From Macrostomum lignano (lineage: Eukaryota), in the NCBI GenBank assembly GCA_002269645.1, contig NIVC01000006.1, positions 930,001 to 994,000 of the forward strand: a DNA stretch of 64,000 nt, in the 5' to 3' direction. The notes beneath the pieces were generated by a model. That model was not told where the DNA came from. It worked only from the letters and a program-made list of their open reading frames with translations, and did no database searches. Position numbers and translations under genes: made by a program. Shown piece by piece: positions 6,301 to 9,300 of the stretch; position 1 is the stretch's first letter; each line of letters opens with the position of its first letter.

Positions 6301-9300
6301 TTGAAACGGTATTTTAAATATTTTAACAGCTCAGCAACCCTGCCAATCGCGTACAAATGCCTGGAAGAGAATAACAAAATTGACCAGAGAGTGACCAGGT
6401 TCATTCTACCTATTGGAGCCACTGTCAATATGAACGGTTCGTACACACTTATAAAGTTGTATTAATAAAAAGCACAACCCTAACCCTAACCCTAACCCTA
6501 ACCCTAACCCTAACTCAAACCAAAATTTTAGGCACAGCTCTTTACGAAGCAGTCGCACCGATATTTATTGCCCAGTTAAACGGAATCAGCCTCGACTTTG
6601 GCCAGCTGATCGCCATTGCGTGAGTATTCGTTCCTGAAGTCCCTGAATTTTTTCCGGTCTGAGGACTTGAAGTATTCTGGTCTGAGGACCTGAAGTATTC
6701 TGGTCTAAGGACCTGAAGTATTCCGGTCTGAGGACCTGAAGTATTCCGGTCTGAGGACCTGAAGTATTCCGGTCTGAGGACCTGAAGTATTCTGGTCTGA
6801 GGACCTGAAGTATTCCGGTCTGAGGACCTGAAGTATTCTGGTCTGAGGCCCTGAAGTATTCCGGTCTGAGGACCTGAAGTATTCCGGTCTGAGGACCTGA
6901 AGTATTCTGGTCTGAGGCTCTGAAGTATTCTAGCCTGAAGAATGAAGTTCTCTCATCTTTCAGGCTAACTGCAACCTGCGCTGCTGTGGGCGCGGCCGGA
7001 ATCCCCCAGGCTGGTCTCGTTACCATGGTAATCGTCTTGAACGCTGTCGGCCTGCCTACGGACGATATTGCTAAGATTTTAGCTGTCGATTGGCTTCTGT
7101 AAGTTGCTATGCTGCTTGGTTGCTATGCTGCTTGGTTGCTATGCTGCTTGGTTGCTATGCTGCTTGGTTGCTATGCTGCTTGGTGCATATGCTGCTTGGT
7201 GCATATGCTGCTTGGTTGCTATGCTGCTTGGTTGCTATGCTGCTTGGTTGCTATGCATCTTGGTTGCTATGCTGCTTGGTTGCTATGCTGCTTGGTTGCT
7301 ATGCTGCTTGGTTGCTATGCTGCTTAGTTGCTATGCTAAATGCATGGTTGCTATGCGAATTCGTTGCTCTGTCGTACTAGTCGTAAAGTATTTTTTGCCC
7401 TAAATTAAATGACAGAAGAACTTCTACTCGCAAAATTTTGAATCAGTTCTGAGATAAGGCTTGTAATAACTTCTGTCCTATACTGTATTGCGTCAAAAGT
7501 TTGTTTTTTCCTAGCAGTTCGCCTTTTGCGAAGCAACAAATTCGGAAGAGCTGCTAGCGAAGCAATTAGACAAAATTCGTGCCGTGTGCCGTAAACTTGC
7601 GAGAAAATTAATTATGGCTTTGCCGTCAAAGTGTGCAATTAAAAATTCACATGCGGGTTAGTGCAATTTATTAGGTGCAAATGCATCCAAATATCAGGAT
7701 GATTTTTTACGCCTGAAATTGCTTTTGCATCACCTATAGTTAAGGCTTGTTAGAGGGAATTGCTGCGATGTCAAGACTAAAGAGGTCAGAAGCTTCACGT
7801 AGTTACCTTAGTTTGTCTGTCTGTCTGTCTGTCTGTCTGTCTGTCTTTGAGTCTGTCTGTCTGTCTGTCTGTCTGTCTGTCTGTCTGTCTGTCTGTCTGT
7901 TTGCTTGTCTGTCTGTCTGTCTGTCTGTCTGTCTGTCTACCTGCCTGTTTATCTGCGTCTGCCTGTCTGTCTGTCTGTCTGTCTATCTGTCTGTCTGTCT
8001 GTCTATCTGTCTGTCTGTTTGTTTGTCTATCTGTCTGTCTGTCTGTCTGTCTGTCTGTCTGTCTGTCTGTCTTTCTGTCTGTCTGTCTTTCTGTCTGTCT
8101 GTCTGTCTGTCTGTCTGTCTGTCTGTCTGTCTGTTTGCTTGTCTGTCTGTCTGTCTGTCTGTCCGTCTGTCTGTCTGTCTGTCTGTCTGTCTGTCTGTCT
8201 GTCTGTCTGTCTGTCTGTCTGTCTGTCTCCTGTCTGTCTGTCTGTCTGTCTGTCTGTCTGTCTGTCTGTCTGTCTGTCTGTCTGTCTGTCTGTCTGTCTG
8301 TCTGTCTGTCTGTCTGTCTGTCTGTCTGTCTGTCTGTCTGTCTGTCTGTCTGTCTGTCTGTCTGTCTGTCTGTCTGTCTGTCTGTCTGTCTGTCTGTCTG
8401 TCTGTCTGTCAATCTGTCTATCTGTCTGTCTGTCTGTCTGTCTGTCTGTCTGTCTGTCTGTCTGTCTGTCTGTCTGTCTGTCTGTCTGTCTGTCTTTCTG
8501 TCTGTCTGTCTGTCTGTCAATCTGTCAATCTGTCTGTCTGTCTGTGTGTCCTAGTGTCTGTCTGTCTGTCTGTCTGTCTGTTTGTCTGTCGAGACTGTCA
8601 GTATTTCATCTTACCTCACAACAACATCAGCATCAATACTAAATTGGACGCGTTGCTTGTCTCTGTATGCACAGTACAAATAACACACACCGCAACAGGG
8701 AGGGCAGACTACTCTGAGAGACTGCTAATAGCTTCCTGTACAGATTAGAAAAGCAATGTGGTATTTCGGCCATAGACATTTCTCCTGAGAGTCATCCAAT
8801 TACCCCAAACATAGGAGAAAAAGAGCAACGCGTTTCCAAGATCTGCATTGAGTTTACGAATATATGTCTGATTTTCATGAAGTGAAGGTGAGTACAAACA
8901 AAGTAAAAGTAAAAAACTGCGCCAAAGTAAAAAAGTCTCTGCTCAGCCTAAGATATCAGCATCTCCTTTGAGCTTTGGCATCAAAGAGCCCACTTTAAGC
9001 CATGGCTTAATGCTAAATCTTATTCTCCCTGTTGTATGTTGGAGATCAGGAATCTCGACACAAATGTAATGTGTCGGTAGCTGTATAACATATGGTTTTT
9101 TTATTAGAGGCAGGGGGGTTGTGTGCACCCTGGCGCACTTTAAGCGACATAGGCACACAACCGGCGAGAGGCATTACTGCCCATTCCGCGGATACGTACG
9201 CAGGCACACACTCACACAGGAGTGTACAGCGGCCCTAACTTTATATTATCGTTAGGCATGTACACTTCACTGCGCCTGGGGGGGGGGGTTGGCTCTCAAG

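Follow-up and report, generated by a model that had tools for sequence, protein, structure and literature searches.

Can a transporter of the EAAT/SLC1 family dispense with the aspartate of its NMDGT motif? The question is raised by Mlig033505, a gene of the free-living flatworm Macrostomum lignano whose copy g2 (BOX15_Mlig033505g2; protein PAA94618.1, P0001) lies on the + strand of a stretch of 64,000 nucleotides (hereafter the window) that is 100% identical to contig NIVC01000006.1 (L002) of assembly GCA_002269645.1. Its product reads NMNGT at the place where the EAAT subfamily reads NMDGT. In the structural and biophysical literature this aspartate is regarded as essentially invariant and indispensable: no other charged side chain coordinates the third sodium site (Na3), where it anchors the third Na+, to which the EAATs owe their very high concentrating power, and it supplies one of the pair of carboxylates in the K+ site, through which the carrier is reset.

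The substitution is genuine. Direct reading of positions 6415-6436 gives GCC ACT GTC AAT ATG AAC G, followed by an intron that begins gttcgt, and the coding sequence resumes at 6532-6566 with GC ACA GCT CTT TAC GAA GCA GTC GCA CCG ATA TTT. The AAC codon (6433-6435, + strand) specifies Asn378 in the numbering of PAA94618.1, and alignment to EAAT1cryst and 151 homologues assigns this residue to the column of GltPh D312, rat EAAC1 D367 and human EAAT1 D400. An earlier sequence-only reading of this DNA had reported NMNG encoded by AAT ATG AAC G|GC, with the AAC wholly inside an exon and the Gly codon split, and the letters bear it out on each point, the split spanning a 95-nt intron at 6437-6531. 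The exon in question, which it called exon 6, ranks sixth among the coding exons of the window but seventh in the annotated gene, in which a further 5′ exon precedes the window.

A false Asn might be suspected to result from an error of base calling, assembly or gene modelling, as one base separates AAC from GAC and a homopolymer problem is likely at least once in the vicinity in the PacBio-based assembly (A8 rather than A9 in a nested GNT-I gene, described below). The substitution, however, lies outside any homopolymer, and the splice model agrees exactly with the transcript-derived protein. Furthermore, the second genomic copy of the gene, g1 (PAA89079.1), on the separate contig NIVC01000166.1, has the identical AAT ATG AAC GGC, the sequence AATATGAACGGC being common to g1 and g2, and two gene models of the older, independent ML2 assembly (P0002 and P0003) also encode NMNG, each agreeing with one of the copies at four positions where g1 and g2 differ. 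Because AAC recurs in the g1 contig and in both ML2 models, a base-call error at Asn378 is very unlikely, and an artefact of whatever origin is barely conceivable. A mutually exclusive exon encoding NMDG was likewise rejected as a candidate, since six-frame reading of the whole window found none.

The protein that carries Asn378 is in other respects a canonical EAAT. Its match to the Pfam SDF profile (PF00375; 364.4 bits, cut-off 27.9) covers profile positions 1-386 of 387, its core aligns without gaps to the EAAT1 structure 5llu_A (a thermostabilised crystallisation construct; E=6e-158), and its identity to EAAT1cryst is 53% overall and ~63% in the core. The AlphaFold2 model (mean pLDDT 76.6) superposes on structures of EAAT1, EAAT3 and ASCT2 with target-normalised TM-scores of 0.92-0.95 (Foldseek), and also matches structures of ancestral uncoupled transporters (9bgy and 9bgz); this agrees with the SLC1/EAAT fold of eight transmembrane helices (TM1-TM8), two re-entrant hairpins (HP1 and HP2) and an unwound loop in TM7, the TM7 helix break being modelled at residues 376-377 as in solved structures. 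The remaining Na3 ligands are all canonical, namely YYLVTT in TM3 (670-687, + strand; equivalents of the GltPh Y89 backbone, T92 and S93) and N376. The ligands of Na1 (TM8 N...D and the TM7 Gly) and the elements of Na2 (the T308 equivalent, Met and HP2) are kept in GATVNM, MINVLGD and GAAGIPQAG, the acidic-substrate Arg together with the TM8 Asp and Thr substrate ligands in VDWLLDRFRT, and the proton-acceptor Glu after Tyr in the TALYEA of TM7b. The canonical set comprises the equivalents of GltPh Y89, T92, S93, G306, T308, N310 and M311 and of D390, D394, R397, T398, N401 and D405. The sequence-only reading had listed HP1, HP2, the YE proton site and the TM8 signature DRFRT..N...D with its Arg as intact; all are present (HP1 as SSSATLP, HP2 as GAAGIPQAG), as in EAAT1-3 (SLC1A3/2/1), and so are TM3 YYxxTT and FIAQ. 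Unlike EAAT1-3, the flatworm protein has Asn for the NMDGT Asp, the Na3 and K+ ligand, on which both genomic copies agree, and Pro for Ala in TM7b. Unlike the ASCTs, in which the substrate Arg gives way to Cys or Thr and the proton Glu to Gln, it retains both residues.

Few further changes accompany Asn378. Comparison with the 151 homologues revealed just three other conserved columns at which the protein has a rare residue (F227Y, T350A and L445K), none of them the position of a known ion ligand, and no relocation of the charge near Na3, such as an acidic residue at the positions of T92, S93 or Y89, was seen in the NMNG protein or as a rule among other proteins with Asn at this column (the N class, as opposed to the D class with Asp). 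The EAVAPIF of TM7b, also pointed out in the sequence-only reading, is real (Pro388; codon CCG, 6558-6560). As a general compensating partner of Asn378 it was rejected: a Pro at this position occurs together with NMDG in P0194 and in six D-class representatives, and in the same alignment no other N-class protein has it. The proline is not systematically linked to the Asn.

The exon model, assembled from splice sites and homology, runs within the window from an acceptor at 329 to the TAG stop at 15174-15176 (329-15176, + strand), and its nine in-window exons, when translated, reproduce PAA94618.1 exactly from residue 18 onward; outside the window, ~470 nt upstream, the gene has one additional, short 5′ exon (..AEKPYGTFS). 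The first five exons occupy 329-842, 1448-1490, 5042-5081, 5507-5684 and 5758-5991, the second and third being micro-exons of 43 nt and 40 nt that encode part of a TM3-TM4 loop which, compared with that of EAAT1-3, is very short and bears one NGT glycosylation sequon. The sixth (6330-6436) encodes the end of HP1, TM7a and the first base of the NMNG Gly codon; the phase-1 intron that splits this codon (gt...ag; 6437-6531) ends in ttttag and contains six perfect telomere-type repeats, (CCCTAA)6, at 6478-6513. In g1 the same intron is 173 nt long; the 95 alignable bases are identical and the length of the array differs between the copies. TM7b, with the proton-acceptor Glu codon GAA at 6546-6548, is encoded by the seventh exon (6532-6619), HP2 (GAAGIPQAG, 6989-7015) and the start of TM8 (VDWLL) by the eighth (6964-7098) and, after an intron of 7.85 kb, the substrate Arg, the Na1 Asn and Asp and the C-terminal tail by the last (14948-15176). 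The reading frame is open, and each of the nine splice sites within the window is intact. There is also indirect evidence that the gene is transcribed, because the GenBank annotation of GCA_002269645.1 was built solely from RNA-seq data and transcriptome assemblies and micro-exons of this kind are unlikely to come from a purely ab initio prediction.

Among the closest relatives Asn is confined to M. lignano. NMDG was found in 116 of the 120 best full-length matches, the fish EAAT4/EAAT1-like matches included, with NMNG solely in three M. lignano entries; NMNG was absent from the 120 best fragment matches and, P0413 excepted, from 80 further proteins obtained by a search with P0266, a Logan protein with NMNG. 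The closest relatives, more than 230 in number, are all NMDG. The full-length search for flatworm orthologues returned nothing above 57% identity except the M. lignano entries, and a 157-aa query around the motif returned only short fragments of at most 73% identity, all NMDG and none from Macrostomum. P0266 is the nearest N-class neighbour of the flatworm protein in a neighbour-joining tree and was considered as its orthologue; it was rejected because its search missed the M. lignano gene among the 120 best matches, yielding instead P0413, a second NMNG relative, and P0245, an NMDG paralogue from M. lignano.

Across the wider family the picture differs. In an exhaustive HMMER search of one representative per 50%-identity cluster, a sampling that over-weights divergent sequences, 24 of the 148 representatives (~16%) had Asn at the column of the Na3 aspartate. 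They include the rotifer relative Seison nebaliae, the nematodes Gnathostoma, Romanomermis and Mesorhabditis and the midge Chironomus; teleost paralogues from Chanos (‘EAAT3-like') and Antennarius (‘ASCT1-like'); Physarum, Acanthamoeba and Luapelamoeba; the cryptophytes Hanusia and Guillardia; the green algae Chlamydomonas and Myrmecia; and metagenome-assembled genomes of Planctomycetota and Nitrospirales. The remaining ligands are kept in nearly all of them, although the substrate Arg is changed in some (to Cys in Chanos, Thr in Antennarius and Ser in Chironomus). Most N proteins have D proteins as their nearest neighbours, and parsimony with a D root required ~20 state changes on the neighbour-joining tree, which is rough and carries no support values. 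At least five clades have kept Asn despite deep internal splits (P0266/P0413, with 56% identity; P0325/P0326; P0316/P0349; P0339/P0386; and Nitrospirales), and all 17 members of the Nitrospirales cluster have it. A search of the open-access literature found no description of a natural NMNG or NMNGT variant, and NMNG apparently represents a widespread natural variation of the NMDGT motif that has so far gone undescribed.

Like the other natural NMNG members of SLC1, the flatworm protein combines this Asn with otherwise preserved Na1, Na2, Na3 and substrate residues, but it is not orthologous to them. Its core identity is 58-63% to the NMDG proteins from Lineus and Dimorphilus and to human-derived EAAT1 and at most 51% to any other NMNG protein, and its nearest neighbours (Lineus, Dimorphilus, EAAT1cryst and P0245) are all NMDG, which places it outside any ancient NMNG clade. 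Being nearer to NMDG than to NMNG proteins, it acquired its Asn by an independent, lineage-specific change. Two side observations concern the N class. The EAAT-like proteins P0356, P0373, P0379 and P0391, from bacterial metagenome-assembled genomes and a metagenome, share ~45% identity with animal EAATs, and those of Planctomycetota and Nitrospirales carry the eukaryote-type YE proton-acceptor Glu and FIAQ together with NMNG. At the position of GltPh Y89, the N class has 13 Phe and 8 Tyr versus 18 Phe and 83 Tyr in the D class, counts that are uncorrected for phylogeny.

Has the gene simply escaped selection? In a recently polyploidised genome, D378N could be a tolerated damaging mutation in a duplicate under relaxed constraint that is drifting toward loss of function; M. 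lignano DV1 holds extensive duplicated sequence, D to N takes a single G-to-A transition, and g1 and g2 are so alike, with alignable intron sequence 98-100% identical, that selection since their split is weakly testable. Between the copies there are 6 synonymous and 4 nonsynonymous substitutions, giving a pN/pS of ~0.24 (one-sided binomial test versus neutrality P=0.025), a test whose power is weak with only 10 substitutions between very young copies whose introns are nearly as alike as their exons. This ratio nonetheless argues against relaxation, as do the open frame, the intact splice sites and the indirect signs of transcription, and N378 is the sole departure among the coupling residues. 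The NMNG protein is, moreover, closer to EAAT1cryst than is the M. lignano NMDG paralogue P0245 (BOX15_Mlig008161g3), with core identities of 62.7% versus 57.3%, and the values for a nemertean EAAT are 62.3% versus 60.4%, so that it is neither fast-evolving nor placed on a long branch. It has long been diverged (62% core identity to Lineus and 54% to P0245), yet all the other invariant residues are kept. Expression, an intact structure and conservation no lower than that of the NMDG paralogue indicate that the gene is not decaying, and we consider relaxed constraint improbable; Mlig033505 would then be an intact, selectively maintained EAAT-type carrier of acidic amino acids present in two near-identical copies. 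Another M. lignano entry, P0122 (UniProt A0A1I8IRB6, 1163 aa), is an older model that fuses a GPCR domain to the sequence of this EAAT and is probably a chimeric prediction of the earlier assembly.

What the Asn might do is suggested by studies of the same aspartate in well-characterized carriers. In the GltTk crystal structure, Na3 is coordinated by the Asp side chain, two TM3 hydroxyls, the motif Asn and a backbone carbonyl, and in the refined site a single Asp carboxylate oxygen touches Na+. GltPh D312A is dead. With GltPh D312N, Na3 binding, the opening of HP2 and the conformational switch of NMDGT are all abolished, and simulations show K+ to be bound more weakly at the K1 site, by 40 kJ/mol. 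EAAT2 D399N abolishes the K+ activation of anion currents, the protein being expressed and its glutamate-induced anion currents remaining. In EAAC1, D367A loses the exchange current, and D367N chiefly lowers the Na+ affinity of the empty carrier, with cycling inhibited according to the title of the original report (Tao 2006), as given in a citing paper. The sequence-only reading had invoked the NMDG Asp as a Na+ ligand and a harmful effect of engineered D-to-N changes, and the GltTk structure and the GltPh, EAAT2 and EAAC1 mutants back both statements. Its functional suggestion, that the paralogue may be a poor transporter, a gated anion channel or a carrier with altered ion coupling, is a reasonable one and has partial support. 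The flatworm protein resembles EAAC1 D367N, EAAT2 D399N and GltPh D312N in having the identical residue change in an otherwise canonical site; it differs from these laboratory-made mutants, with their impaired Na3 and K+ binding and cycling, in that its allele is natural, conserved and expressed and is known here from its sequence.

From the behaviour of these mutants we infer all functional consequences of N378 that are proposed here, and on this basis we tentatively favour, with rather less than even confidence, an EAAT dominated by anion conductance and/or exchange and performing little canonical uptake. In a background that otherwise resembles mammalian EAATs, glutamate or aspartate and Na+ would still bind the NMNG carrier and still drive its gating and elevator movements, and the empty carrier would bind Na+ weakly. 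The K+-dependent return step would be lost or very slow. Its main activity would then be a substrate-gated anion conductance and/or substrate exchange, with little canonical 3Na+/1H+/1K+ concentrative uptake; for bulk uptake the animal has the NMDG paralogue Mlig008161. Possible functional analogues are EAAT4 and EAAT5, of low turnover and dominated by anion conductance, and the obligate exchangers ASCT1 and ASCT2. To our knowledge, all four of these keep NMDG.

Several points weigh against so reduced a transport function. The natural Asn of the 24 cluster representatives occurs with the other ligands kept, also in bacteria, amoebozoa, cryptophytes and green algae, and a channel-like role is implausible in the bacterial, protist and algal proteins, which are presumably working transporters. 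Its retention over deep splits is compatible with a selectable function. Since a single Asp oxygen contacts Na+, an Asn carbonyl could substitute geometrically, and the engineered mutants were made without any co-evolved background. Functional data on any natural NMNG protein were not found in the open-access literature. Recurrence with the ligands kept thus moves weight from a crippled transporter toward a working protein with altered cation coupling. Such a protein could be a compensated and normally cycling transporter, a reading that we consider almost as likely as the favoured one. It would move glutamate and aspartate efficiently but use fewer Na+ (2, for example) or bind them less tightly and lack K+ antiport, the Asn oxygen still lining the Na3 pocket or the pocket staying water-filled; it would be a natural carrier of low stoichiometry, with lower concentrating power and more easily reversed. 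The repeated origin and persistence of Asn in lineages with a probably working transporter favours this account, as do the conservation of all other ligands in the N class, the single-oxygen coordination of Na3 and the unusual TM7b Pro of the flatworm protein. A precedent comes from bacteria, where TM7-centred allosteric changes made Na+ binding dispensable and the Na+-site residues decayed afterwards (Reddy et al. 2025, PMC12668577); this Na+-independent ‘intermediate' clade is a case of natural loss of SLC1 Na+-site residues, but Na+ dependence was lost first there and several residues decayed, whereas the flatworm EAAT has a single ligand changed. On the other side, D-to-N or D-to-A changes abolished or severely impaired transport in three backgrounds, no obvious compensating change lies near the site, none of the three rare substitutions being at a known ion ligand, and the TM7b Pro occurs in NMDG proteins too. 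The charge might also be restored after translation, by deamidation of N378-G379 to Asp or isoAsp, which would turn NMNG into an NMDG-like motif over time. No sequence deamidates spontaneously as readily as Asn-Gly, the Gly of the NMNG context is invariant, N378-G379 falls in an unwound, hydrated loop and residues 376-377 are non-helical in the model. The main product of deamidation, however, is isoAsp, by which the loop would be distorted, buried sites in membranes usually react slowly, and the recurrence of Asn may equally reflect the easy G-A transition; we regard such regeneration as speculative and highly improbable.

The recurrence raises a broader proposal, which we consider somewhat doubtful at present: the change from NMDG to NMNG, which arose independently ~20 times in organisms as far apart as bacteria and fishes, may be a switch to which evolution has returned repeatedly and which defines a functionally distinct and so far unrecognised SLC1 class of reduced cation stoichiometry. 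If so, NMNG carriers would operate without the third Na+ and/or K+ antiport and show lower concentrating power, easy reversal or exchange, or a dominant anion conductance, and the M. lignano protein would be the cleanest natural test case, with one changed coupling residue in an animal amenable to transgenesis and RNAi. The natural, conserved Asn in an otherwise canonical metazoan EAAT, like the ~16% of cluster representatives that share it, shows that evolution repeatedly tolerates or exploits the loss of this charge. It bears on whether the Na+:substrate stoichiometry of eukaryotic SLC1 proteins is evolutionarily tunable, as shown for bacteria, on whether paralogues in which a transporter has turned into a channel or exchanger exist beyond vertebrate EAAT4 and EAAT5, and on which compensating features make D-to-N viable; normal transport by an NMNG protein would itself inform models of the Na3 and K+ sites.

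The rest of the window contains several further features. A glycosyltransferase gene of the GNT-I family (PF03071) lies antisense within the last EAAT intron (9919-11528, minus strand), a position at which the GenBank record lists no gene. It is broken into two overlapping open reading frames (ORFs) by a run of A8 on the coding strand (T-run at 11007-11014), whereas the paralogous locus (L001 19911-21386) has A9 and one continuous GNT-I ORF of 489 aa; the A8 reflects either misassembly of the homopolymer or a genuine frameshift in this copy. The same intron holds a remnant of a hAT transposase dimerisation domain (13371-13808, minus strand). Downstream of the EAAT gene we noted a PQ-loop protein (16395-17000, minus strand), a prolyl 4-hydroxylase alpha N-terminal domain (24802-25419, + strand) and an exon of an SLC4-type bicarbonate transporter (59269-59733, + strand). 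Very long tetranucleotide arrays (GACA/CTGT-type) and a 28-bp minisatellite, at 2735-3875, 4400-4990, 7800-8560, 17012-17545 and 53500-53980, occupy introns and intergenic DNA and generate long spurious ORFs.

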